Positions 7,538 to 58,386 of a stretch of DNA of 64,000 nucleotides are shown here, piece after piece (position 1 is the first letter of the stretch; every line of letters begins with the position of its first letter). The notes below the pieces were generated by a model. That model was not told where the DNA came from, did not search any database, and saw only the letters and a program-made list of their open reading frames with translations. The stretch spans positions 186,001 to 250,000 of the forward strand of contig NEEC01000017.1 in the NCBI GenBank assembly GCA_002189035.1, given 5' to 3'. A program made the position numbers and the translations under genes. The DNA comes from Utricularia gibba. Lineage: Eukaryota; Plantae; Magnoliophyta.

Positions 7538-8965
7538 CCCGGAAGTCTATTTCTTGGTACATCTTGGGTCGATTCCACTGCATATGGTTTTTTCTAATAC
7601 AACGAGTATGCTTTCAATTTTTGCTTCAGATTATGTACAGGGTTTAGGGTTTAGAATTAGAGTTTGTGGTATGAATAGATTCAATTTTCAGATTGTAAAA
7701 TTATTTTTAAAATAATATAAAACTACATTATAGATTTCGATATATTAAATTATATATTATAAAATTTAATAATTTAAATTATTGCATAACTTAATGTGTT
7801 AATATAAATGTATTTTTGAAGTATACCATCCAACTAGATGAACAAAGTAGCAATTGAAATCCATTCCAATAACACTTTGAGAGTAAATATTATGATTTTT
7901 ATGATTATTTTTTTGTAAAATTTATCGTATGAATTTATGGTAAATAGAACACTAAAAAAAGAAAACAATCAAAACTTTAGGTACGTAATACATTGTCTTA
8001 AAGAACTTCTCAATCTTCTCAGATTTAAGAAGTTTTTCAAAAATACTCTATCAATATTAAAAATTAGTCAATACATATGTATCTAATTTTAATGGGGTTG
8101 AGACAAAATGAGACAAAACATGGTTTGGCCCGCACACACATGCGAGAAGCTTTTGAAGTCGGTTTTGTACCCCATGTCCACGTAGCTTTTTTGGATTTCA
8201 AGACCCTTCAGAAACCCAACACAATTTAATAAATTAGAATCATATGCACATGCAAGACCTAATTCATTCTCAATCCTATCAAAATTAATGAATTGATATA
8301 CCATATAACTAGTTGAAGAGAACTTCAACTAGCAATATGGGATAATTACCTCTTCTTCAATGTCTAATATTTCCAACAATCCTCCACATATTGGAGAAGG
8401 ATTAAGTCGTGTAGACTTTAATGTCTAGAAAATGGTATCTTTTGATTATAAACCAATTTCTTGATTACACTACACATGTAATATATTTTGTAATATAGAC
8501 ATATAGCCAATCATACCAAGCCCACCTATACAATTATCGACTGTTTAACGCTCAAGTGCACCCATAAACCGAATACAACTTCTATTGATTTATAAGTACT
8601 CTAGAGATCACATATATCTCATAGGAGCAGCTATCCTTCACATTTATATATGTGTCTTTGCTAGACACACGTTGCTTATATGTGTTATTGATTTTTATCA
8701 ACTACATAAACATTAAGAGTAAATGCTCATCTCCCACTTTGCAGGTAGAATACATATTTCATAGGAACGACCACTTGCCTAAAGTTGTATTCTCCGAATT
8801 AGTAGTGACTTATTATTACTCATATGAACATAATCAAGTGTTTTTACTATCATTGGTTGGGTTACCATCATTGCTGTTTACTTAATGACATTAGTCTCAT
8901 TCCTCTTGAAAGCTCAAAGATCTTCTCTCTATTGAAAGGTTTGCTAAGTGGATCGATCAAATTCA

Positions 8966-9228
8966 CTGATACTCTTAGGCCTCGTTTGTTAGGTGGGTTT
9001 AGCCCTCTAAACCCTTGGGTAAAAAGTGTTGTATGTGTTTGTTGGGGTGGTTTAGTAAAACACAAGGGTTTGTATTAAACCTGCAGCTGCTGATACTCTT
9101 AGGCCTCGTTTGTTAGGTGGGTTTAGCCCTCTAAACCCTTGGGTAAAAAGTGTTGTATGTGTTTGTTGGGGTGGTTTAGTAAAACACAAGGGTTTGTATT
9201 ATCCCAAATTAAACCTGCAGTTGCTGAT
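8966..9228 (+). repeat. Tandem duplication (124-bp period) of the left end of Harbinger copy 1 including 12 bp of flank
   Basis: CTGATACTCTTA-GGCCTCGTTTG... starts at both 8966 and 9090; the first copy lacks 10 bp (ATCCCAAATT). Confidence 0.95.
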
Positions 9229-9538
9229 TTCACAAAACCCACGTGTGAGGTGGGTTTTGAGAAACCCATCTCACACAAATACAACTTGGTCGATAATACC
9301 CTTCTACTCCATAAGCAAATTCGCAACAGTAAATCTGTATATTTGTTCATCCTCTTCAACACAAATCTGTTGGGTTTTTGCAGGTACATGGTGAGTGAAT
9401 TCGAATTCTGATATTTCAACGAAAACCCATACTTCAATTTAAGCCAAGAGTACTTATTTTTTGTTTCGCATATGATGGAGTCGGTTTTTTTTTTCTGAAA
9501 ATTGCAGTAGGTTGTGCGTTGCTTATTGAGGCTATTGC

Positions 9539-10896
9539 AATGGTTTCAAAGAAGATTATTTTGGCTGCCCTTGCTGCGGCACATTGCGTTGGTCAGCATC
9601 TATGTATTATGCGAGTTATGATTGTTATAATGTTGCATTTCTGTTGTACACCAACCGATAGGAGAATTCGATTCTCATATCGAGAAAAGATACCGCGAAA
9701 AATAGAGCATTTGACTACCTTGTTATCTGATTCAAGGAGTGCTTGTCTTGAAAACTTACGATTATGTGCAGATGTCTTCAACAAGTTATGTTATGTTCTT
9801 CGAAGTAATGGTAGACTAACCACTTCAAGGTATGTCGATGTTCCAGAGCAAGTTGCATTGTTTTTGGGTATTTTGGGTCATCACAGGAAAACAAGGCAAT
9901 AGAAATTTGAATTCATGCGAAGCAGCTGGACAGTGTCCAAATATTTCAATGTGGTATTGTCGGCGGTGCTGTCATTGCACCAAAATTTACTTAAGACAAC
10001 TATGCCAATTGATGTTTCTGATCCCAATTCTAGCTTCAGATTTTTCGAGGTATGCAAGAAGATTTTTCTTCGTAGTTGTGGATGTGCAACGTGTATTCTG
10101 CATGCTGTAACTTTTTGCTCTATTTTTCAGAATTGCTTGGGTGCATTGGATGGTTCATATTTTCAGGTGAAAGTCAAGAATCAGGATAAACCAAAGTGGA
10201 GGAATCGTAAATGAATCGTGTCCACTAATGTGCTAGGAGTGTGTGATGATAAGCTCATGTTCATCTATTTGTTGTCCGGTTGGGAGGGATCCGCTGCTGA
10301 TAGCAGGGTGCTGCGAGATGCAGTTTGTCGACAAAGAGTATTCACTGTACGCAAAGGTAGGTGCTTACAATGTGTAGAAGTCCATAGTTATGATTACCTT
10401 TCATGTATTCCATTTTTTTGTAGGGTATTATTACTTGTGTGATAATGGCTACACAAACGCAGAGGGATTTCTAGCACCCTACAGGGGTGTTCGATACCAT
10501 CTGAAAGAGTAGGGTGTCGGGTCCATTGCTCCACAGAATGCGAAGGAATATTTCAACATGCGGCATGCTTCTGCAAGGAATGTTATTGAGAGGGGATGGG
10601 GTCTAATGAAGATGAGGTAGGGCATTTTACGAAATTATAGTTTTTATCCTATTAAAACACAAACTCGTATCATACTCGCATGTGCCCTGCTTCACAATTT
10701 TATTCGGCGAGAAATGCCAACTGATCCATGGGAAGAGGTCATTCCGGAAGAGTACTGCAATCCGGATTCACAGGAATATGAAGATGATGAACATATTTCC
10801 TCCATAGGAAACTCAGAGGAGTGGACATAGTGGCGGGATTCAATGGCTGAGATAATGTTTGTGCAATGGAGAGAGACCACACGAAGAAGGGTATAA
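9539..10896 (+). pseudogene. Harbinger DDE transposase, pseudogenised
   Basis: Motifs EQVALFL, NCLGALDGS, GWEGSAADSRVL, YYLCDNGY, PYRGVRYHL, RNVIER, ACALLHNFIR. Introns near 10049-10130 and 10358-10423. In-frame stops at 9900, 10212, 10510, 10618 and 10828. Confidence 0.93.
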
Positions 10897-11348
10897 GGTG
10901 TACTAATGAAGCCTGATATTTTATTGGTTTGGCATAAAAACATTTTATTTCATTTTCCAATAGTTGATAAGCATGGCGTTGTGTTGTATTCATATTGTGC
11001 AAACACATCAGTTATTCCAGACAGGATTTGCTTCTTACATTGGGTTATTTCCCACGGTGAATTGCCTTATTTATCCTGGATTGTTGTCATAGCAAATGTG
11101 ATACAGTCACTGGAAACTAGAATTTGCAGTGGAAAGATATGATAGGGTTGAAGGATACTTCATGTTTCCACACACTGTTGACTCATACATCTGGGTGCAA
11201 CTATTGCATGCTCTACACTATCTACATGTACATTGGAAGAATTGCATTCTAGGTACTGTGAATATCTGCTCTCGGTGCCTGGATGAAATGTGTTCCTAGC
11301 ACCGCAATACGCCGCTATTGGTGCTTGGAAGTCCAGTGTACCAGACAC

Positions 11349-11737
11349 CGCAAAAGTTTTGTCTCGGTGTCTACAAGACACCCCTTTTAGGCACTGCAAA
11401 ACTCCGCTCTTAGTGTCTGAGAGACATGCGTCCCAGGCACTGCAGAATGCTGCTCTTGGTGTCTGGAAGACACGTTATTTTAATATTTTCATTAGCGTTC
11501 GATTCTTAGGTATACTTTGGATCGAGCATTAATATAAATTTAAAATAAAAAAATATCCACTCGATTCGAATGATACCTAAGGATCGAACGCTAATAAAAA
11601 TAATAAAATATCGTGTCTTCCACATACCGAGAGCGGCATTCTGCAGTGCCTGGGACGCATGTCTCTCAGACACTGAGAGCAGCGTTTTGCAGTGCCTACA
11701 AGGGGTGTCTTGTAGACACCGAGACAAAACTTTTGCG
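11349..11737. repeat. Internal fold-back inverted repeat (~165-bp arms) in Harbinger copy 1
   Basis: CGCAAAAGTTTTGTCTCGGTGTCTACAAGACACCCC... is mirrored by ...GGGGTGTCTTGTAGACACCGAGACAAAACTTTTGCG; ORFs 11290+ and 11506- give near-identical peptides. Confidence 0.93.
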
Positions 11738-12828
11738 ATGCATAGTACACCGAGACCAAAATTTAAGATTATGAATTACAGAATGTTTCCTTTATGGATT
11801 TAAATTAGTTCGAGATTACATAAGATTTTTTTAATCTTATGCATATGAATTTATTTAAAATCACCTACTTTTTTTACATTAATTAAGTTTGATTTTAATT
11901 TTATTAACTATTTTAATACCTAATTAATTGATATATATCATATTTATTTAAATTCAAGTAAAAGGCTGCTCTCAGTGTCTGGGAGACATGCGTTCCAGGC
12001 AATGCAGAATGCTGGTCTCGGTGCCTGGAAGACACACTGTAGACACCACGACCTTTGAAATAGGTGCCTTGAGCAATCACGAGCTAGAATGAATATTAGG
12101 CCTCGCGTATTTGGGCCTCATAACAAACCCTCCAGCCCAGTCCTCACCCTCCTTCACCACGCACCTAATCGCCGCACACTACAAAGCACGGCACACCGTC
12201 CCCACCTTAACCGCATGGTCCCTCCCCCATTTGCTTTCCTCTGATCTGTCTATCTCAAGAAATGCTTACTTCCAAGAAACTCCAACTTCGGTTCGCCATC
12301 CCAGAGATGTACAATCTATGGGACAAGGCAAGCGATGAGACAATTGACGGTGTGGTTCCACCCAGGGTGGGAGTAACCGGGTTTTCGGTGTCCACCAAAC
12401 AAGGGAACACGGGTGTGGTTTATGCATAAACCATGCCCGTATGCCCTTGTAAGGTATACACGATCCAAATAAATATCCACTCGACTCGAATCACACCTAA
12501 AGATCGAACGCGACACACATGCACTCAGTTGGCGCATCGATGCCAGGCACCGCAATTGCGGTGCCTGAAAAGATAGGATGCATGATAGACACTACAACCT
12601 TTCTTTGCAGTGTCTAGAAAGGGACGAGTTCTGATGTTCTGCTTTCTATAGGTTACAGGGGCTTGATAAATATATTTGGTTACACAAACTGAAATCAGAT
12701 ATCAGCTACCCATGGCAAACATGTAAAGCGTAATATTGTCACGCAAAGCAAAATGATTGTCATGATACATGGACATCATAAGTGGATATGATCAAAACAA
12801 CAAAGGAAAAACAGAGGTGTAACGAACA

Positions 12829-13909
12829 TCATAGACCTCTCACAATCCCATTCACCATAACCTCACGTTCTGCACTATTGCTGTCCAGAAAATGATGTAA
12901 CTTTATGGGGTTACTCAAGATGACTTCAGTTACTCCTAGACGCTGCATTGTAGTTAATTGTAATGGCTTCCCTTTGATGATGTCTGCAGAAGCATTTCGA
13001 CGTTCTCGTAGGTCATTGTTTTCAACAGTAAGTATTTCTCCCAGTTGTGCGATGGCAACATTTGTTCGCTTACTCATTTCTTTCAACTTCTCCACCAAGC
13101 TATCAAGTTCTAGACCTTACCTCCTCTTCTTCTTCCTAGGTTCATCACCACTGGTTGGTGTAGTGTGATTACTTGTGCGGCCTCTAGGAGTCCCTCCTGA
13201 TGAGGGATACTCTTCATATGTAGAGGATGCATCATGTGATCTTTGGTCACCATTTTTTTCCGAGTCAACCTCCACTTCAGGATACTCAAGAAGATGCAAT
13301 GGTTGTTCCAAACCGGCCATAGAGTCATCAGCATGTTGTGTTGCATCAGCAGCATCAAGGACACATTCTGCAAATTCTCCGGTGGCTCTATCTTTGCCAA
13401 AGATGATGCACCAATCTGGATAGTAAGGCCAACGCTTAAACCACAACAAATTGTACACCTTCTCATTGTGCTGTACATGTAATCCATAAGTGTACATTAA
13501 TAATCTCATAGGAACTACCTACTACATATATATTAGAACAACAATACCTGTTTGAACTCCACCCACAAATCCTCACTAGCATCTACCATGTTTGTTGAGT
13601 TATCATACCCGGTATCTGACTTATTGAGAAAGTCAGATAGGGCATTGTAATCTTTTTTCCAGTTATGAATCTTTGATTGCATGTGGGGAGTACCTCTGAT
13701 ATCTGAGCCGGGACACAATTTGAGGAACGCCTCCTCTAGTGCTTGAAGGTAATTACCTTTGAATCCATTCTATGCTTTCCATCCACCTTGAATGATATCC
13801 TTTAGAGTGTGGATTAGAAAGCGCTCTTTATCAGGTTTCCACTGTCTTTTGGTCTTAATGTTATCACCACTTCTCCCACGTTTTGTTGTAAGCACGCTTG
13901 CTCCAACCA
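12829..13909 (-). pseudogene. Harbinger Myb/SANT-like DNA-binding ORF (copy 1), pseudogenised
   Basis: KRQWKPDKERFLIHTL...GWKA*NGFKGNYL...SKIHNWKKDY; WPYYPDWCIIFGKDRATG; KKKRR NLS; one intron ~13510-13546; stops at 13770 and 13117. Confidence 0.9.
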
Positions 13910-16900
13910 TTTTTGCAACCAACACATAAGTGCGCAACCCATGACAAAACCACAATGCACGTGTAGCTCAATATGGCACAAGAAGTATAACAACATTATA
14001 TGGGTTTCAGGGGCACAATTCACAGCCATATTACTCAAAAAACATCACGCACACTAACACCTAGTCGCTCAATCCACGTGGTTAAGGTCATTCAACCGGC
14101 AAATGAAATAAATGCCTCAAATTCGAGAAAAAAATACCTAGTGCATCACCCAATACCCAATTTTTTGGTAAATCAAACTTGCTCCCAGAGTTGCATGAGC
14201 CGAAGATCCATGCACATCGCAACTCGAGGGTTTCGAATTCCTCAATTTGAATCTCACGTTTCTACATGTGGGGTCAAAATAGGATAATAAGATATTATAT
14301 TATACATAAAGGGTATATTAGAGAATTCATATTTTCGAGTATTGAGAACTTATGCATAAACCCTTCTAACAAACATATAAAATTGATAATCCCATATTAT
14401 TGAACCCTATCTACCAAACACATACTTCATTCTAAACCATTATTTATGAGATACAATAAACTAAAATTATCTAAACCCTTTTAATTTAAACCCACCTAAC
14501 AAACGAGGCCTTACATATTCAACAAATATCATACCAATTTTAGCAACTGTTTTAATGTTCCATGCCTTTGTCGCATGTGTATATTTCTTTCATCATAGGA
14601 TCGATTATTGACTATGGCAATTGCTGCTTGACAGTCACATTGCAGGACAAATGAGAAGGAACCATGTTGCTTGAGCGGGATTCCAATCACATAATTTGTC
14701 AACCACTTGGCTTCAATTTGTACTAGATCTAATGCAATGAACTTTGTTTTTATTGTTGATCTAGCTATCAAAGTTTGTTTAGTATATTTTCAGGACATAA
14801 CTCCTCTTCCCAATGTGAAAATCATTTCACTTGTGGCCTTTAGCTCTTCTGTCTCAAATACCCAACTAGCATTATTGTATCTCTCCAATATAGTGAGTTC
14901 TTTATGATATTGAATGTCATAGTCATCAGTCCCTTTAAGGTATGTTAGCAACCACTTCACAGCTTTCCAATCGTTCTCATTTAGATTGTGTGCATACCAA
15001 CTCAATCTACCAACTGCATACGCTATATCAGGTTAGGTGTGATTCATTAGGTACATCACACTTCTCATAATCTGAGTATATTCACTCTGAGATACAAGAT
15101 CATCTGTATTTTTCATTAAGCTAATATTGAGATCATACAGAGTCCTATTTGGTTTCACATCATGAAAACTAAACTTTTTTAAAAGTTTCTGAATATAATG
15201 ACTTTTAGTTAAGAGAAACTCTTCTTCATTTCTCATGATTTTGATTCCCAATATGTAGCTAGCTTCACCCATATCCATCATCTTGAATTTTGAGGTTAAG
15301 AATTTCTTGGCCTCTAGTAAAGTGTCTAGGTTTGGTCCAAAGAGCAGTATATCATCCACATAAAAATGGTTATGATCACACATTGATTATTAAAAGTCTT
15401 AGAATAAACATATCTCTCAACTATATTTGATTTGAAGCTTGATATTATGACTTCATCAAATTTTTTATGCCACTGTTTAGGTGTTTGTTTCAAGTCATAT
15501 AGAGACTTCTTTAGTTGACATACCTTATGTTCGTCTCCAACTTTTATACAACCCTTAGGCTGAAATATGTAGATTTTTTCTTCTAATTCACCATTTAAGA
15601 ATGCTATTTTGACATCTATTTGGTGAACTGTCCAATTGTCCACAGATGCCATTGCAAATAGTACTCGTAGTTGTATGGCAAAGAAGTGAACTATTGAGGC
15701 AAATGTCTCAAACTAGTCAACACCTGGTTTTTATGTGGAACCTTTTACTACAAGTTAAGCCTTGTATTTATTTACTTTACCATTTGTAAGGAGTTTTTTT
15801 TTAAGATGCGTTTGCTCTCGATCGACTTTGCTCCAAGGGGTAGGTCCACTACTTCCCATATATTGTTCTTATAGATTGAATCTATCTCATTGTCAATGGT
15901 CTTCATCCACAATATAGTATTTGGGGAAGTAATTGCATTAAGGCAAGTTAGAGGATCTCCAATGGTGAGATACACATAAAAGTCATCGCCGAAGCTAGAG
16001 TATGTCCTTTGAATTTTGTTTTGTCTTAGAGACACTTCTTCTAAGGGTTCACTAGTTTCAATAGTTTAATTGGTAGGTATCTCATCACCATCTAGTTGAT
16101 TTTTTGCTAAAGGAAATATATGCTCAAGGAATTTTGCATTCTTTGTTTCTAGTATCATATGATGATTAAGTACATTATGCTTGAGTATAAGAAATTGATA
16201 TGCAGCACTTCCTTGTGTGTATTATATAAATAGACAATCATATGTTTTGACTCAATCTTCCTTTTTTTAGAATAAGGTAATATCATTTTTGCTAAACATT
16301 TCCACACTCTTAAATATTTAAAATTTGGTATGTAACTTTTCTATATCTTATATAGAGTTTTACCTATTTTTTTGTGTGAGATTCAATTCTGAACATGCCA
16401 AGCTGTGAGAATCGCTTTGATAGCACACAAATTTTTATGTTTTAAGATATGATAATTATAGCTTTTTAATTATGCTTTCATTGTTATTTTATAGTTTTAA
16501 GTATTTTCTTTATATAACTTAGGTAATATATAAATCCTTTGATTTAGCCAATCCTGTGTTTCAACTCAATTGTGAGTCCAACAACAAGTCCCAAAATTAT
16601 ATAAAGACACAAATATTTCGTGAAAGTCACCATGTAGTAGGAGGAGCAGAAGGCAATGAGTACACTACTATGGCGGCAGTCTGCAAGTCAAGGACAAGAG
16701 TAACAGAGTTGTCAGAGATCGTACTAACCTTGGGAAAGGAGAGAGAGCAATAATTATGAAGGAGAGAGAGTCAAGAGGAGTTTGGAGAGTTTCAACACAC
16801 ACACGGATATGGGGCTTCTCCTCCAACACGACAAACACTGAAACAGAGGGGAGAACAAGGGTGATTTTCTAGAGAAGAAAATATTTTCTAGTTTCCAAGG

Positions 16901-48798: not shown

Positions 48799-48924
48799 GG
48801 CCTCGTTTGTTAGGCGGGTTTAGCCCTCTAAACCCTTAGGTAAAAAGTATTGTATGTGTTTGTTGGGGTGGTTTAGTAAAACACTAGGGTTTGTATTATC
48901 CTGAATTAAATCTGCAACCACTGG

Positions 48925-49590
48925 TAAAATTTTGGTCTCAGTGTCTACAAGACACCCCTTCTAGGCATTGCAAAAGGTTGCTCTCAGTGTCTAGGAGACA
49001 TGCGTCCCAGGCACTACAGAATGCCGCTCTCGGTGTCTGGAAGACACGTTATTTTAATATTTTTATCAGTATTCGATCCTTAGGTATGATTCAGATCGAA
49101 TGTATATTTTTAATTTAAAATTTTTATTGGCATTCGATCCTAGGTATACTTTGGATCGAGTTGATATTCATCTATTTTAAATTTTCATTAGCATTCGACC
49201 CTTAGGAGCAATTTAGATTGTGTATATATGACAACCCACAAGTGCGTGGTTTATGCACAACCCACGTCCGTGTGTCCTTGTCATGTATACACAATCCAAA
49301 TTGCTCTTAAGAGTTGAGCGTGAATATAAATTTAAAATAAATAAATATCCACTCGATTCGAAAATATACCTAAAAAACGAATGCTAATTAAAATATTAAA
49401 ATTAAAAATATACGCTCAATCCGAATCATACCTAAGGATCGAATGTTGATAAAAATATTAAAATAACGTGTCTTCCAGACACCGAGAGCAGCATTCTGTA
49501 GTGCTTGGGATGCATGTCTCCCAGACACTGAGAGCAGCCTTTTGCAGTGCCTAGAAGGGGTGTCTTGTAGACATCGAGACCAAAATTTAA
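48925..49590. repeat. ~660-bp near-complete fold-back palindrome centred at ~49255
   Basis: AAATTTTGGTCTCAGTGTCTACAAGACACCCC... is mirrored by ...GGGGTGTCTTGTAGACATCGAGACCAAAATTT; centre GTGGTTTATGCACAACCCAC. Confidence 0.9.
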
Positions 49591-49664
49591 GATTATAAAT
49601 TATAGAATGTTTACTATATGGGTTTAAATTAGTTCGAGATTACATAAGATTTTTTTAATCTTAT

Positions 49665-51007
49665 TGATGCGTGTCGTTTCCACAATAAATTTTAATACTT
49701 TTAAAACTCGTAAAACACAAGCGTAGTACGGGTGTTGAACATAGGGAGTTGTTTTTGAGTGAAAGGTGAGGCACCCCGAATACAACTGTCACGATTTGTA
49801 AACGGTTTTGATGGTAAAAGGTGCGAGAAACGTTGATGATGAAACTTGAGTAAGGAAATGAGAGGGTTTTTGAGCAAACAACTAAAATGAACGTAAGCGA
49901 TGAACCTTAAATAAAGTAAATGTTCCTGGGTTTGGAATCCTATCTAGCTATGTTCGTTGCGTCTTCACTCTTCTCTGGTCCTCTTGAGTACTCGGTTATA
50001 GGAGCAAGGAATTGACTACCCTCCCTTAAACTCTCTTGCAAGAAGGCACGGGAATAGCCCGATGTTGCTCCTCCTTGGACGAACATGAGAATAAGAGGTC
50101 TTGCCAGCGTACCCTTACGGCTGAATTGCACGCGTGTGCCCGAGTGTTGCCAATGACCCAATGAGTCCAGATACGAGGTCACTACCTGTCTATTGATCCT
50201 GAGGTACGACCACATACAAAATGTTGTCTTCCTCCTGCCAAAAGGGCTTGAGTTGGTGCTTTCCACCTTGCTCCTCTCCAAAATCCGCGGGTAGTGATCA
50301 ACTAACCATGAACCTTAAATAAAGGGACTGTTGCAGAAAGACTGCAACATAGTCGCGCGAAGACATACGAAACCCGTTCGGATTCAGAGAAAATGTGAAG
50401 ATAAGCTAACGATACATAGATCTGGGGGTGTTCCAACCCAGAAACGTAAGTTTCTAGCCGCGAACGGCCATCAAACTAAAGAAAACGAAACAAAGTTCTA
50501 GAGAGAAGCTAGAGGAAAATTCCTCTAGAGAGAGAAACAAAAGGGAAAACTAAACTAACTACTCCCTCTTTCGTCTGAACAGAACTCCCACTTCAATGAG
50601 GGTCTGAGATTTCGTGTCCTTGTGATTCTGCTGAACTTGGGATGACTTGCAAGCAACGTCTGACACTGGTACGCTAATGATGTCGCCTGTCAGAGACTCC
50701 CGTGTTCCGCACGTCAAGGCTCATGATTAAGCGTCTGCAGTCTTCCGAAAATCAAGGAATGTCAGCTCGGGAAGATCTAATTTGTCGCCATCTGATACCC
50801 TCTTTCTCTCACTTCCTACCACGTGTGCACCTCTAGAAAAACTCAATTAAAATTAATAAAATTATTACATAAAATTCAAGATTTAAGATAATTACCCTAA
50901 ACTAGATAAAAACTTAAATTTCATATTATAGATCCCTAATTAGACACTTCTAATCACAATTAAACATAAAAACAACTTAAGAAATAGTAAGAAAATGACA
51001 CTTAACA
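49665..51007 (-). mobile_element. Athila-like solo LTR inserted in Harbinger copy 2
   Basis: 1343-bp insertion absent from copy 1; TG...CA ends; flanks CTTAT/CATAT (5-bp TSD, one mismatch); minus strand starts TGTTAAGTGTCATTTT. Confidence 0.8.
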
Positions 51008-51434
51008 CATATATATATATGAATTTATTTAAAATCACCTACCTTTTTACCTTAATTAAGATCTATTTTAATTTTATTAACTAAATAATACCTAATTAAT
51101 TGATATATATCATATTTATTTAAATTCACTGCATAAAGCTGCTTTCAGTGTCTGGGAGACATGCATCCTAGGCACTGCAGAATGCCGCTCTCGGTGTTTG
51201 AAAGACAAGTTGTAGACACTGCAACCTTTGTTCGCGGTGCCTGGAGCAATCACTGGCAGGAATGAATATCGGGCCTCGCGTATCTGGGCCTCATAACAAA
51301 CCCTCCGGCCCAATCCTCACCTTCCTTCACCATGCACCTAATCGCCGCACACTACAAAGCACGGCACACCGTCCCCACCATAACTGCATGGTCCCTCCCT
51401 CATTTGCTTCCCTCTGATCTGTCTATCTCAAGAA

Positions 51435-53245
51435 ATGCTTACTTCCAAGAAACTCCAAGTTCGGTTTACAATCCCAGAGACGTACAATCAATGGGACAAG
51501 GCAAGCGATGAGACAATTGACGGTGTGGTTCCACCCAGGGTGGGAGTAACCGGATTTTCGGTGTCCATCGAACACTTTCGGGGTGGACTTCGCTTGCCAC
51601 CACCACCATTCATATGTGAGTTGCTGGCATGTTTGGAGGTCCCATTGTCCCACCTGACACCCCGCTCAATCGCTCATGTGCTGACCTTTTTGAGTGTGTG
51701 CATGGAGGAACAAATTACTTTGGCCCTACCAGTTTTTTTTGCCATAAGTGTGTGTATTCAAAACCGGAAAACTAATCATTTCTCGTTGAAGTGTAAGCTA
51801 GGTATTGCACTTGTGAATTCTATTCGAAGTGGATATGATGCATGGTGGACAAGCTTCATTTGGGTGTGTCCACCGGAAGACCTCCGAATTTCAACTACTC
51901 TCGGCTCCTTCAAGAAAATTGAAAAGGCAAAGGGTAATGTGTAATGTAGTATGGTTGCATGGCTAGTGTACTATGATTTATGATATTCGATTATCCATAT
52001 TGTAGGATTTGATAAACTATCGAAGGAAGGGGTGGATGCCTTGTTGACTATGTTTAGTGAAAAGAGTAAGGCTTTGAGTGACATAGTACCCCCCGTGGTG
52101 GACGCTGCCGGTACTCGCCACTTCTGGTGTGGTCAGGGAAGAGTGATACGTGAGCGACCAAAGCCTGACGACATGATCATTGAGGAAGAGATGTCACTAG
52201 CATTTGCATCTGATCGACAGCGGGATGTAGGGAGCAATGTGGAGGAAGACAACCCGCAACCAACTACTAGTGTGGATGTGGACTGAATTATGGAAGAGAA
52301 TGCCCATCTTTGTGCAAGGCTAGATTGGTATGAAAGTAGGTGGGCATACACTAGCCCCAGTTCATTGCCCCAGCAACAAGTGCGCAAGCTCCTTGTGTTA
52401 GACGTTAATGGAGTGCTAGCAGACATTGTCTTCAAAGCCAAGTACCAAAGGTTGCATCGGAAACCAGAATGTGTGATATATGGGCGAAATAGTAAGACAA
52501 CTTAACATTGTCTCATGGCTGTGTCATGTTCAACCAATCCATTAGTTTTTCTCGCTTGGCAGTCTTCCTCAGGCCCTTCGCTCGTGAGTTCATCTAATGG
52601 TGTCTTGTAAACTTTGATGTAGACATATGGTCTTCAAGGGACGCGTAAGTCCCACTCCACGAAATCTACAGTGCATGTGCTGCTATCTAATGCTCTAACA
52701 TGTGTCTATGTTCTATAGTGCACAACTACATGAGATCATCAAGTGGGTGTTTGGGCCAAATGCAGACACCTCACTGGCTTTCATATGGGATGTATCCAAG
52801 ACCACTGAAACGCATGTATGTGTGCATGATGATAGGTCAAAAGCTGCTGTGTTGAAGGAGTTGTTGCGGGTTTGGGGGGAAGATGAAGGATTCTTGGGTC
52901 GGTATGATGAAACCGACACCTTACTTATTGGCGACTCCCCATTCAAGTCCATCAGAAACCCAGTTAAGTCAATCTGTGATCATATGGACTGGTACGCATG
53001 TTTCCTACTAACACTTAGGCCATGGTCTTATTGTGCCACACCATGGCAATGCTATCTTCCCGACGCCATACCAGTACATGGATGTAAGAGATGTTGCGTT
53101 AGTTGAGTGTGGAGAAATACGCATATTCCTTCAAGGTCTACTAGAAGCAAATGATGTACCAAGTTTCATGAAGCATGTACGAATTGGATAGCCTCCGTTA
53201 GATGCTAATAACCCACTATGGGATTATTACAAAGTTCTTGCTTGA
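51435..53245 (+). pseudogene. Harbinger-borne third gene: Transposase_28-like domain fused to an FCP1/NIF-like HAD phosphatase domain
   Basis: Exons 51435-51933, 52006-52491, 52563-52644, 52719-52962 and 53042-53245 splice in frame (1515 nt; the last acceptor reads AC, so exon 5 is inferred). Motifs HFRGGLRLPPPPFICELL...SHLTPRS, RKLLVLDVNGVLADIV, IFLRPF...FDVDIWSS, TLLIGDSPFKSIRNP, NAIFP. Three nonsense codons. Confidence 0.85.
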
Positions 53246-53409
53246 ACATTCATAGCATGTAACAATGGTTTGAATTTCGAAACATTATGATGTTACTCAC
53301 TCTACTTTAATCATGGATTTGTCAATATACATTTGATAAATTAAAGTAAGTAAATATATGTTCTCAAATAATATATTTGAGAACATATTATATGCATACT
53401 TTAAAATAG

Positions 53410-53850
53410 ATGATAATATATATGATGTTACTCACTCTACTTTAAAATAATACCTTGAATTAATATTTTTATTAGCATACGATCCTTAGGTATACTTTGG
53501 ATCGAGTGCATATTCATTTATTTTAAATCTTAATTAGCGTTCGACCCTTAAGAGCAATTTGAATTGTGTATACCTAACAAGGGCACATGGGCGTGGTTTA
53601 TGCGCACGCCTGTATGCATATACAGCAGCACCACAAGGTCACACGGGCGTGGTTTATGCATAAACCACGTCCGTGTGCCCTTGTTAGGTATACACGATCC
53701 AAATTACCCCTAAGGGTCGAGCGTTAATATTTATTTAAAATAAATAAATATCCACTCGACTCGAATCACACCTAAAGATTGAATGATAATAAAAATATTA
53801 AAATAAAAAATATACGCTCAATCCGAATCATACCTATGGATCGAATGCCA
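53410..53850. repeat. Second fold-back module downstream of the cargo gene, with a perfect 22-bp palindrome
   Basis: CGTGGTTTATGCATAAACCACG at 53648-53669; arms homologous to the inner part of the 48925-49590 palindrome. Confidence 0.85.
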
Positions 53851-54250
53851 CACACATGCAGTCAGATGGTGCATCGATGCCAGGCATCGGAAGTGCATAT
53901 TTGCGGTGCCTAGAAAGATTGGATGCATGCCTTTGAAAGGGCAATCCAGTGTAGTCAATACTTCACACCTAACAAGCGGGAGGTCGGGCTGAGTGTCACA
54001 CACATGCAGTCAGATGGTGCATCGATGCCAGGCACTGGAAGCGCATATTTGCGGTGCCTGGAAAGATTGGATGCATGCCTCCGAAGGGCAATCCAGTGCA
54101 ATCAATACTTCACACCTAACAAGTGGGAGGTCGGGCTGAGTGGCACGCCACACACATGCACTCAGTTGGCGCATCGATGCCAAGCACCGCAAGCGCATAT
54201 TTGCAGTGCCTGGAAAGATAGGATGCATGATAGGCACTGCAACCTTTATT
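53851..54250 (+). repeat. Tandem repeat, ~150-bp unit, about 2.6 copies
   Basis: CACACATGCA-x-TCAG-x-TGG units start at 53851, 53999 and 54151. Confidence 0.92.
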
Positions 54251-54483
54251 TGCGGTGCCTAGAAAGGGACGAGTCCTGCTGTTCTGCTTTCTATAGGTTA
54301 CACCTCTTGATAAAGATATTTGGTTACACAAACTGAAATCAGATATCAACTACTCATGGCAAACATGTAAAGCGTAATATTTTCACTCAAAGCAAAATGA
54401 TCGTCATGATACATGGACATCATAAGTGGATATGATCAAAACAATAAAGGAAAAAAGGAGGTGTAACAAACATCATAGACCAA

Positions 54484-55550
54484 TCACAATCTCATCCACC
54501 AAACCTCACGTTCTGCACTATTGCTGTCCAAAAAATGCTGTAACTTTATGGGGTTACTCAAGATGACTTTAGTTACTCCTAGACACTGCATTGTAGTTAA
54601 TTGTAATGACATCCCTTTGATGATGTTTGCAGAAGCATTTCGACATTCCCGTAGGTCATTGTTTTCAGCAGTCAGAATTTCTCCCGATTGTGCGATGGCA
54701 TCATTTGTTCGCTTACTCATTTCTTTCAACTCCTCCACCAAGGTATCAAGTTTTGGACCTTGCCTCCTCTTCTTCTTCCTAGGTTCATTACCACTGATCG
54801 GTGTAGCGTGATTACCTATGCGGCCTCCAGGAGTCCCTCTTGATGAGGGATACTCTTCATATGTAGAGGATGCATCATGTGATCGTTGGTCACCATTTTT
54901 TTCTGAGTTAATTTCCACTTCAGGATACTCAAGAAGATGCACTGGTTGTTCCAAACCAACCACAGAGTCATCAGCCTGCTGTGTTGCATCAGCAGCATCA
55001 GGGACACATTCTGCAAATTCTCCAATGGCTTTATCTTTACCGAAGATGATGCACCAATTTGGATAGTAAGGCCAACACTTAAACCACAACAAATTGTAAA
55101 CCTTTTTATTGTGTTGTACATGTAATCCATAAGTGTACATTAATAATCTCACAGGAACTACCTACTACATATACATTAGAACAACAATACCTGTTTGAAC
55201 TCCACCCACAAATCCTCACTAGCATCTACCATGTTTGTTGAGTTATCATACCTGGTACCTGACTTGTTGAGAAAGGCATATAGGGCATTGTAATCTTGTT
55301 TCTAATTATGAATCTTTCATTACATGTGAGGAGTGCCTCTTATATTTGAGTTGGGACACAATTTGAGGAACGCTTCCTCTAGTGCTTGAAGGTAATTACC
55401 TTTGAATCCGTCCTCTGCTTTCCACCCATCTTGAATGATATCCTTTAGAGCGTGGATTAGAAAGCGCTCTTCATCAGGTTTCCACTGTCTTTTGGTCTTA
55501 ATGTTATCATCACTTCTCCCACGTTTTGTTGTAGGCACGTTTGCTCCAAC
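54484..55550 (-). pseudogene. Harbinger Myb/SANT-like ORF (copy 2), pseudogenised
   Basis: KRQWKPDEERFLIHALKDIIQDGWKAEDGFKGNYL; WPYYPNWCIIFGKDKA; stops near 55311-55322; C-terminal frameshift relative to copy 1. Confidence 0.9.
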
Positions 55551-56160
55551 CATTTCTGCAACCAACATATAAGTGTGCAACCCATGACAAAACCATGACG
55601 CACGTGTAGCTCAATATGGCACCGGAAATATAACAACATTATATGTGTTTCAGGGGCACAATTCACAACCATATTACTCAAAAAACATCACGCACACTAA
55701 CACCCAGTCGTTCAATCCATGTGGTTAAGGTCATTCAAGTGGCAAATGAAATAAACGCCACAAATTCGAGAAAAAAATACCTGGTGCATCACCCAATACC
55801 CAATTTTTCGGTAGATCAAACTTGTTCCCAGAGTTACATGAGTCGAAGATCCATGGATATTACATCGCAGATCGAGGGTTTTGAATTCCCCAATCTGTGA
55901 GTCTCATGTTTCTACATGTGAGGTCAAAATAGGATAATATGATATTATATTATACATATATGGTATGTTAGAGAATTCATCTTTTCTAATATTGAGAAAC
56001 TATATATAAACCCTTCTAACAAATATAGAAAATTAATAATCCCACATTATTGAACCCTATCTATTAAATACATACTTCATTCTAAATCATTATTTATGAG
56101 ATACAATAAACTAAAATAATCTAAATCCTTTTAATTTAAACCCATCTAACAAACGAGGCC

Positions 56161-56312
56161 TTAAGGTTTCGAAAGCCTGTTAGGTATCATCATTCTATGA
56201 GAAATTATCCTTTTTGAAGAGCTTAGTAAATGGCTTGCTTATATTACCATAATTCTTGATGAATTTCTAATAATAACACACAAGACTAGAAAACCTCTTA
56301 AAGCCTTAACAG
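56161..56312 (-). pseudogene. Ty3/gypsy RT-RNase H connection fragment
   Basis: VKALRGFL...YY*KFIKNYGNISKPFTKLFKKDNFS*NDDT*QAFETL matches GFLGLTGYYRKFIKNY...AFExLK. Confidence 0.8.
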
Positions 56313-56925: not shown

Positions 56926-58386
56926 ATGGACGAGATTGAAAGGTGGATGGATGTGGGTTCAGTAAACAATTTATGCGTGAAATGCAGTGAAGGGGAAGAT
57001 TTGTTGATCTGTAGCTCCACAAAATGCCCTATAGTTGTTCACAAAAGATGTTTGGGATGTCCTGCTTCATTTGATGGTGATGGAAACTTCCGTTGCCCCT
57101 ATTGTGTGGCCGTGTTAGCGGAGGAAGATTTACTTCGAGCAAGAAGAGAATGTATTTCTAAAAGGGACGCTCTTGTGACTTTTATTAGGCTACAAGCGGT
57201 CGGAGGCACAAAGGATTCCGAAGAATATCACATGGATGAATCCAATAATAGGCCCAAGCATTCAGAAAATGGTTCAGAAAAGATAAATGGTTCATTATCC
57301 GATGGCAGTAAGGGTAGAGACCATAGCGTTGAAGGTGAAGAATCTTTACGTAAGAAACAAAGGACTAGGAATGATGTGGAAGGAAGAACTCGGGAGGATG
57401 AACCTGGAACTTCTTTGGGTCATGTCTACTCGGCTGAGGTGACAAAACATAAAGCTATTTATGCAGATGTAGCGAATTCACAAGAAAAGGAAATTCCTGT
57501 TTCTAGATGTGAAACCATCCCAGAAGACAAAAACATCACCTATCCAGCTTCTGAAGATCAAGGATCTTCACTCAAGAACAGCAAGGATCAAAGTATCAGC
57601 AAACACCCCGGTCAAGACCTTTCGATTATTGTGTACAGTACTCCTCTAAATCCCCAAAAAATATCCTTCAGGGCACCAGCTTCTGTAGAAAATGAAAATG
57701 TTTCTAGCTACAGGTTTGATCCATCGGCAAGTGCAGAACAACAGCCCACTTCCTCATTGTAAGTTGCTGAATATTACAGAACGTGCTTCAATTGCTGATC
57801 TGACAATTTGGGCTTATAATCACCTTGCAGAGATACTGATTTTTTGGTAACACGGAAATCCAAGAGAGTTATGTGGAGATTGGAAGAAGTAGAAATGTTA
57901 AAGGTGAATTTTTATACACTGGTTTGCTTGAACTGACGTATTTTTGTATTACAAGGAGTCTTATTCTACTTTTCCTTCTTATGTCAAGCATTTTAGGGCT
58001 AATACGCATTTTACGTGCTAATAGGAGCTAGGAGCTTCACGTCATTTTTCTTTGTGTTGTGAGTGCAGAAAGGAGTGCAGGAATTTTCTAGAGAACACAG
58101 AAATATTCCGTGGAGGAAAATATTGGAATATGGACATGAAGTGTTTGATGTGAATCGTACTCCAAGCGATCTCAAAGAAAAATGGAAGAAGGTTTCAAGT
58201 AAGCTTCCAATATCAGAACCAGAATATACCGACATTGATGAAGCCGAGCACATTCAGAACTTTAGTATCATGCCTGATCTTGTGACACAGTTTAATGATG
58301 CTTCTTTTGAATTGTATTGTGAGGCTGGCCTTTTCATCTTACAACCTTCCTGTTTACACGCATCTGCATCACTGCATTGCCCATGA
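56926..58386 (+). CDS. PHD-finger + C-terminal TRF-like Myb/SANT protein (At1g01150/TRFL10-like family)
   Basis: CVKCSEGEDLLICSSTKCPIVVHKRCLG...FRCPYC (PHD); WRLEEVEMLK-KGVQEF...IPWRKILEYG...RTPSDLKEKWK (Myb). Exons 56926-57713, 57831-57903, 58069-58386. Confidence 0.85.

Follow-up and report, generated by a model that had tools for sequence, protein, structure and literature searches.

The window analyzed here is a 64,000-nt stretch of the Utricularia gibba contig NEEC01000017.1, to whose positions all coordinates refer, and it harbors two collinear copies of one PIF/Harbinger DNA transposon family. Copy 2 (48799–56160, forward strand, 7362 bp) is a non-autonomous element without transposase that carries a Myb-like gene together with a five-exon gene, designated gene 3. 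Copy 1 (8978–14510, forward strand) contains transposase remnants, a stub of gene 3, and a Myb-like gene. Gene 3 is probably a dead copy of a third gene that is specific to this transposon lineage, and its product would join a Transposase_28 (TRP28) domain at the N-terminus to a NIF/FCP1-homology domain at the C-terminus.

Exon structure and reading frame of gene 3

The five exons of gene 3 all lie on the forward strand. Exon 1 (51435–51933) comprises codons 1–166 and contains no stop in frame, compared with 8 and 7 stops in the other two frames. Exon 2 (52006–52491) encodes a linker with an in-frame TGA (52284–52286), after which the NIF domain begins and motif I is found (LLVLDVNGVL), and exon 3 (52563–52644) has an in-frame TAA (52595–52597) and motif II (IWSS). 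Exon 4 (52719–52962) encodes the core of the NIF domain, including the motif III lysine at codon 402 and the motif IV residues G-D-S-P. In exon 5 (53042–53245) the NIF domain ends at 53176 and is followed by a TAG (53189–53191), past which the frame of the original prediction continues to a TGA at 53243–53245.

When these exons are joined in the window sequence, a single frame of 505 codons is obtained, which bears out the five-exon frame of about 504 codons proposed earlier. The spliced frame contains four stops (TGA 52284, TAA 52595, TAG 53189, and the terminal TGA), as opposed to 27 and 36 in the alternative frames. Composition-matched shuffles contained 28.6 ± 5.0 stops, none of the 5000 having four or fewer, and flanking non-coding controls of equal length contained 22–34. 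Gene 3 was thus a coding frame until recently.

The splice sites give a similarly clear picture for the first three introns, whose canonical GT-AG ends had been predicted and are confirmed by reading the sequence: intron 1 is 72 nt long (GTAATG..TTGTAG), intron 2 is 71 nt (GTAAGA..TGGCAG), and intron 3 is 74 nt (GTAAGT..CTATAG). Intron 4 (52963–53041, forward strand, 79 nt) has a GT donor at 52963 and, at 53040–53041, AC instead of the AG acceptor. A search of the gene 3 sequence found no canonical in-frame AG acceptor for intron 4 that would leave an intron of plant size. The exon 4/5 junction nevertheless aligns without a gap to the NIF family, with DSPYKAIRNPANTAIHP placed over DSPFKSIRNP|HGNAIFP in the alignment to the family hidden Markov model (HMM), and this lends independent support to the AG>AC change that had been suspected at this acceptor. 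An alternative GT-AG intron at 52976–53018 was rejected, as it measures only 43 nt, too short for a plant, and disrupts the family alignment.

The internal stops fall where they had been reported, namely at codon 260 (TGA 52284), codon 340 (TAA 52595), and codon 487 (TAG 53189). Each had been proposed to descend by a C>T change from CGA, CAA, or CAG. Contigs from three DNA runs of the same species were aligned to 50400–56200 at an identity of at least 80%, and C>T and G>A prevail among the copy differences. A C>T origin of the stops is therefore plausible, but it is unproven; at the column of codon 340, where a CAA ancestor had been claimed, the NIF family has mostly E, L, or R. One of the three stops may not be a lesion at all. 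The NIF alignment ends at residue 482, and because TAG 53189 is located five codons beyond that end, it may be the native stop of the gene, the 17 open codons that follow not being significant. All three stops counted earlier as premature are thus present, but only two of them would then be lesions. In either case, two or three in-frame stops and the loss of a splice acceptor have disabled gene 3 in copy 2.

The position of TGA 52284 between the two halves of the frame raises the question of whether they ever formed one protein. It could be argued that a TRP28 protein ends at this TGA and that a separate NIF protein begins at the ATG at 52290, as this ATG lies 3 nt past the TGA and opens a 71-codon open reading frame (ORF; 52290–52505). 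The absence of T>C at 52284 among the best 40 of 1615 copy differences points weakly in the same direction. However, a single exon contains both parts, which share one frame, a 3-nt spacer is too small to hold a second eukaryotic promoter, and the TGA is one CpG transition away from CGA, a change of the very type that dominates among the copies. We consider two adjacent genes quite improbable, and a fusion of TRP28 and NIF in one protein is very likely, though this single copy is no proof of it.

The N-terminal TRP28 domain

The prediction that the N-terminus resembles Transposase_28 holds when exon 1 is compared with Pfam, since residues 44–102 (51564–51740) score 35.4 bits with the PF04195 model, above its cut-off of 26.2. 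Among 1.84 billion representative proteins, an exhaustive search that used exon 1 as the query returned 16 weak matches, none above 37% identity. TRP28 was the only domain present in the ten best of these relatives, which were scanned with Pfam and contained a NIF domain in no case, and NIF sequence was likewise absent from the loci of exon 1 relatives (L001–L007). No relative of exon 1 was found in the metagenome scan, and the N-terminal 259 residues of the gene 3 protein have no match within the NIF loci described below.

Three exon 1 relatives are located on long contigs, where they lie antisense and adjoin Gypsy reverse transcriptase and integrase genes. This placement matches the arrangement known from Retand elements (PMC11963269). 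TRP28 has been described from the transposons of flowering plants only and shows no similarity to sequences outside transposons; its function is unknown, and DNA binding has been predicted for it (PMC11963269). In one of the loci, L007 on a plant chromosome (GCA_054771495.1), three TRP28-like segments were observed in tandem within 3.5 kb (positions 10151–13612 of that locus).

The C-terminal NIF/FCP1-homology domain

The C-terminal half of gene 3 is broken into short pieces by the stops and introns, and direct searches with these pieces were negative. The stop-free NIF pieces (49–81 residues) are too short for a match to PF03031 in Pfam and gave none even at an E value of 10, phmmer searches of PDB sequences with the same pieces, again too short, yielded chance matches only, and word-indexed protein searches with the exon 4 ORF, the exon 2 piece, and the Myb ORF produced no match. 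In the ESM Atlas, 70 of the 100 clusters nearest to the exon 2 piece belong to PF03031, and 95 of the 100 nearest to the exon 4 piece are NIF clusters, the best of which scores 0.91 and shares 191 features.

For comparison, a set of 42 metagenome loci was assembled by means of a degenerate DNA pattern for K-L-L-V-L-D-[LV]-N-G-[LV]-L-x-D, and the C-terminal part of gene 3 was spliced from the window with an X at each stop to serve as the query. The seven ORFs of this set that were tested all pass PF03031, at 53–65 bits. In tblastn the query matches the ORFs of the 42 loci with up to 112 bits (E 2.5e-30), at 30–38% identity across 150–244 residues, most of which lie outside the motif used for selection. 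An HMM built from the 42 ORFs gives the gene 3 protein 167.5 bits over a full-length domain, of which domain 1 covers residues 275–319; the same model gives no match in 200 shuffles or in the reversed sequence. When the whole window is translated in six frames, this HMM finds the three fragments of gene 3 and nothing else, and it finds them in the correct order; scored alone, the stop-free piece of exon 4 reaches 63 bits and exon 5 reaches 27.5 bits. The alignment also runs without gaps across the exon 2/3, 3/4, and 4/5 junctions. Judging by these alignments, the C-terminal half of gene 3 is a true NIF/FCP1-homology domain. The FCP1/NIF-like C-terminus claimed originally is thus upheld at the level of the family model, but not by a direct match of the pieces to PF03031.

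In a tree, the NIF domain of gene 3 groups with the plant-like loci L041 and L042, to which it is 39% identical, and sits on a long branch. It retains 31 of the 57 highly conserved columns of the family, in addition to the invariant W-S-S, the lysine, and the second aspartate. Such deep divergence coexists with a nearly clean frame, and it is for this reason that a long period of coding constraint is suggested for the domain, which argues against a recent capture of the Pack type.

Eighteen of the comparison loci (L009, L010, L015, L019, L022, L024, L032–L037, L039, and L043–L047) contain two or three closely spaced, paralogous, intron-less NIF genes with D-x-N-G, and many of the contigs with such clusters come from one set of related samples.

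Catalytic residues

Motif I of the gene 3 NIF domain reads D-V-N-G-V, and the canonical D-x-D-x-T/V is absent. The original prediction took DVNGV as a possible sign of a pseudo-phosphatase and also named a host-type subfamily with D-L-N-G. The subfamily does exist, as the PF03031-positive loci demonstrate, and its existence weakens the pseudo-phosphatase argument, since D-x-N-G would be the ancestral state of the subfamily to which the gene 3 domain belongs. The state is common to the comparison set, although that set was selected by the motif and its frequency there is uninformative. Because a natural NIF subfamily has D-x-N-G, the missing second aspartate of motif I was inherited and is no innovation of the transposon.

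The W-S-S of motif II and Lys402 of motif III are kept, both being present in 42 of 42 family members. Motif IV differs: it reads G-D here, as opposed to D-D in the family (42 of 42 for the first and 41 of 42 for the second aspartate), so that Gly427 (GGC, 52930–52932) stands at the position of the invariant first aspartate, while Asp428 is kept. As far as the alignment allows a prediction, Gly427 is a stronger catalytic deviation of this copy than the D-x-N of motif I.

The transposon family and the place of gene 3 in it

The assignment of the two elements to PIF/Harbinger, as made originally, is supported by their termini, target duplications, and coding remnants. Copy 2 is bounded by a perfect 15-bp terminal inverted repeat (TIR), GGCCTCGTTTGTTAG, at 48799–48813 (forward) and 56146–56160 (reverse), and the same TIR is found in copy 1 at 8978 and 9102 (forward) and at 14496–14510 (reverse). 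The 15-mer has six matches in the window, compared with 0.9 expected. TTA borders copy 1 at either end; the duplication around copy 2 is imperfect, reading TAA at its left end and TTA at its right. The DDE transposase remnants of copy 1 (9519–10830, forward strand) contain introns and several in-frame stops. Within them, two collinear partial matches to DDE_Tnp_4 (PF13359) fall below the cut-off of 24.8 bits, at 17.3 and 17.2 bits (each with E of about 0.004), and correspond to profile positions 29–67 (10218–10439) and 104–130 (10513–10617). The catalytic blocks ALDGS, CDNGY, and NVIERGWG can be recognized, interrupted by stops. The Myb/SANT-like gene of copy 1 (12829–13955, reverse strand) matches Myb_DNA-bind_3 (PF12776) at 31 bits over 13536–13769 (cut-off 23.6). 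Its counterpart in copy 2 (54484–55600, reverse strand) is convergent with gene 3 and 91% identical to that of copy 1, and has three stops in the region of the Myb domain.

Copy 1 also preserves the beginning of gene 3. The 5' region of gene 3 in copy 2, a putative promoter of about 420 nt (51017–51434, forward strand), matches 11843–12261 of copy 1 at 89–93% identity. It is followed in copy 1 by a stub of gene 3 (12262–12401, forward strand) that comprises the first 46 codons, is 94% identical to 51423–51574, and ends at a deletion junction. At this junction, where AACA microhomology is present, the equivalent of 51574 abuts that of about 53632, which corresponds to a deletion of 2.06 kb. The earlier statement that copy 1 retains the upstream region and the first 140 nt or so of the gene, from ATG 12262, is accordingly confirmed at 89–94% identity. 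As the promoter and the first 140 nt precede the deletion junction, copy 1 is a deletion derivative of an element in which gene 3 was already present.

The same-species contigs extend this picture beyond the window. Thousands of contigs match 50400–56200 at 80–99% identity, among them long contigs of about 80% identity that cover exons 1–2, exon 2, and exons 4–5. Several contig joints represent deletion derivatives, one of which lacks the entire gene 3. Summed contig depth, which is not equivalent to copy number, was 390–760 over gene 3 and 425–920 over the Myb arm in run X12, and 80–157 and 45–128, respectively, in run X8. Gene 3 is clearly multi-copy, present in diverged copies, and borne by the family. 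The view that it belongs to the element family and is not a local insertion therefore stands, because copy 1 shares it, its depth resembles that of the Myb arm, and contigs of about 80% identity match it. In run X14, C>T (235) and G>A (225) far exceed every other change type (7–76 each); this run looks bisulfite-converted and could serve for a study of methylation in the family.

These observations also bear on the possibility that the TRP28-NIF gene is part of a foreign transposon, for example a Gypsy fragment, that came to lie inside a single Harbinger element. The nearest TRP28 relatives are indeed found in Gypsy elements, and copy 2 does contain one unrelated insertion, a high-copy repeat (49666–51012) that is missing from copy 1, where the sequence runs from the equivalent of 49664 directly to that of 51017. 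This repeat has a summed depth 5–10 times that of the Harbinger sequence in the DNA runs, and many contigs end at 51007. Gene 3 behaves differently. Neither long terminal repeats nor remnants of reverse transcriptase or integrase were found around it, and no insertion boundaries; the upstream junction and the promoter recur in copy 1, and the depth of gene 3 is in line with that of the Harbinger arms, unlike a separate high-copy family. A nested foreign element is, in our opinion, scarcely credible.

A chimera of TRP28 with host NIF exons that was captured once, as in Pack-type elements, and then amplified as a non-autonomous passenger deserves more attention. Several features would be expected of such passive cargo. 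The window contains only dead, non-autonomous copies, the introns have been kept as they are in captured genomic fragments, no RNA run is on record as containing gene 3, and its NIF domain groups with plant-like sequences of the host type. It is harder to reconcile with a frame that is almost clean, with three of four splice site pairs intact, and with a NIF domain that is full length rather than a fragment. The domain is only 39% identical to its nearest plant-like homologue and yet keeps its core residues, which requires long coding constraint, and contigs of about 80% identity still bear the gene. Moreover, no host source is known for the TRP28 half (PMC11963269). On balance we find the capture of passive cargo unlikely, though less so than the alternatives considered above.

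Other features of the elements and their surroundings

Several repeats accompany the genes. A foldback repeat with 144-nt arms lies 3' of gene 3 (53460–53801), with related copies at 49071–49466 and in copy 1 at 11353–11840, and may be either a structural repeat within the elements of this family or a miniature inverted-repeat transposable element nested in them. It has a near-perfect central palindrome of 26 nt (53633–53684) and occurs on both sides of gene 3 as well as in copy 1. It is followed by three tandem units of about 148 bp (53843–54290), each with the 20-mer TATTTGCGGTGCCTRGAAAG. This 20-mer was found four times, and a related motif, GCGGTGCCTGGAG, is located upstream of gene 3 (51225–51250); these sequences are candidates for sites bound by the Myb-like protein or by TRP28.

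The region upstream of gene 3 also contains TGGGCC, AAACCCT, and GGCCCA (51285–51315), the first two of which are present in copy 1 as well (12110–12140). We take these to resemble the site II and telo-box motifs in plant promoters of genes of dividing cells. The left end of copy 1 is tandemly duplicated (8960–9220), such that the TIR and about 100 bp of terminal sequence are found at 8978 and again at 9102, each after the flank CTGATACTCTTA. Finally, an ORF of 278 codons with a PHD-like Cys/His pattern (56926–57762, forward strand) begins about 770 bp past the right TIR of copy 2 and is probably a host gene.

Interpretation of gene 3

We favor the explanation that a PIF/Harbinger family possesses a third gene specific to its lineage and that gene 3 in copy 2 is a dead copy of it, and we assign this explanation a probability of roughly 0.68. 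Combining copy 1 and copy 2, a complete element of the family would measure about 7.5 kb (copy 1 plus the 2.06-kb deletion) and would consist of a TIR, a DDE transposase gene and gene 3 on the forward strand, the Myb-like gene on the reverse strand, and a second TIR. The product of gene 3 would have approximately 486–504 residues, with TRP28 at the N-terminus, a linker of about 100 residues, and a NIF/FCP1-homology domain of the HAD fold with D-x-N-G at the C-terminus. Copy 1 would have lost most of gene 3 by an internal deletion at microhomology, as is typical of abortive gap repair.

In active elements, the gene 3 protein would probably serve as an accessory factor of the transposon. TRP28, given its predicted DNA binding, may anchor a module of the phosphatase fold whose catalysis is altered or which only binds phosphorylated sites. 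Likely targets would be chromatin, RNA polymerase II, or the element's own complex of transposase and Myb-like protein, and the outcome could be modulated expression, silencing, or transposition. A more specific proposal is that a Harbinger lineage acquired and now maintains under selection a protein in which TRP28, the accessory domain of Retand Gypsy elements, is joined to a catalytically altered FCP1-like domain, and that this protein acts on RNA polymerase II, chromatin, or the transposase complex and promotes expression or escape from silencing. We hold this proposal to be tentative and rather doubtful, although somewhat less so than the capture of a passive passenger.

A number of points weigh against the explanation that we favor, or against its functional part. 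Only one near-complete copy of gene 3 can be read, and it is a pseudogene; an intact copy was not directly seen. No RNA run is on record as containing the gene, and the one run aligned in this connection, X1, gave no match; such an outcome would be expected of a dead copy where RNA data for the species are few. Over the 46 codons shared by copies 1 and 2, the differences are mostly non-synonymous; this excess fits neutral decay and is uninformative on selection. It is also possible that the NIF domain of gene 3 was captured from a divergent paralogue of the host. The predicted catalytic set is incomplete, with D-x-N in motif I and Gly427 in this copy, which speaks against the functional part, and the mechanism outlined above is one that we infer throughout.

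If the more specific proposal above is correct, gene 3 would be the first accessory gene with a phosphatase fold in any DNA transposon, and it would offer the first evidence of TRP28 as a module that DNA transposons and retrotransposons exchange. A Harbinger family with TRP28-NIF would give TRP28 a second, independent transposon context, together with a fused partner whose presence hints at what TRP28 does; it might control transcription, silencing, or the transposition complex in a phospho-dependent manner. Since the family seems to be abundant in this genome, it should not be difficult to recover intact members.

Comparison with known transposons and phosphatase-domain proteins

Every PIF element so far known from a plant or an animal has two genes, according to PMC9710019. 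Full-text searches of the literature yielded no description of a Harbinger element with FCP1, NIF, a phosphatase of the carboxy-terminal domain, Transposase_28, or a third ORF or gene. The three-gene arrangement with TRP28-NIF is thus apparently undescribed in the searchable literature. In other respects the family is similar to canonical PIF/Harbinger elements such as maize PIF and rice Ping/Pong, as it shares their short TIRs starting with GGCC, the 3-bp TTA duplication, a Myb/SANT-like protein encoded separately, and non-autonomous derivatives with internal deletions, and its copy 1 contains putative remnants of their DDE_Tnp_4 transposase. It differs from their two-gene organization (PMC9710019) by a third gene of five exons, which is placed after the transposase and before the convergent Myb gene.

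The antisense TRP28 ORFs of Retand Ty3/Gypsy elements (PMC11963269) have the PF04195 domain in common with gene 3. Here, however, the domain resides in a DNA transposon, is N-terminal and fused to NIF, and is at most 37% identical to any protein searched. At its other end, gene 3 resembles the D-x-N-G NIF proteins (L008–L049) in its LLVLD-x-NG-x-L, its WSS, the lysine of motif III, the block DSP-x-K...NP...AI-x-P, and the short spacing of the plant type after motif I. It is nevertheless only 30–39% identical to these proteins and lies on a long branch, and it differs from them in being transposon-borne, in its N-terminal TRP28, and in the Gly427 of this copy.

A link between a transposon-type domain, a phosphatase, and the silencing of transposons is known from the PMD-PP7 module, in which MAIN/MAIL1 act with PP7L and the two parts are fused in MAIL3 (PMC7156037). 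MAIL3 likewise joins a transposon-type domain to a phosphatase-fold domain and can be regarded as a conceptual precedent only. PP7 is a phosphatase of the PPP type, whereas the NIF domain of gene 3 is of the HAD type, and MAIL3 is a host gene; no sequence relationship is to be expected. Another parallel is VANC of the VANDAL elements, an additional gene through which the transposon influences silencing by the host. This likeness is an analogy, for which no homology is claimed and in which the function of gene 3 is itself inferred, but gene 3 would extend the short list of DNA transposons with accessory genes to which VANDAL elements belong. Lastly, gene 3 resembles the products of Pack-type capture, as in Pack-MULEs, in that host-like exons with introns are enclosed in an element with TIRs. 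Captured sequences of this type are usually recent fragments with high similarity to a host gene, whereas gene 3 has a full and diverged domain that is fused to TRP28 and has been kept in diverged copies of the family.

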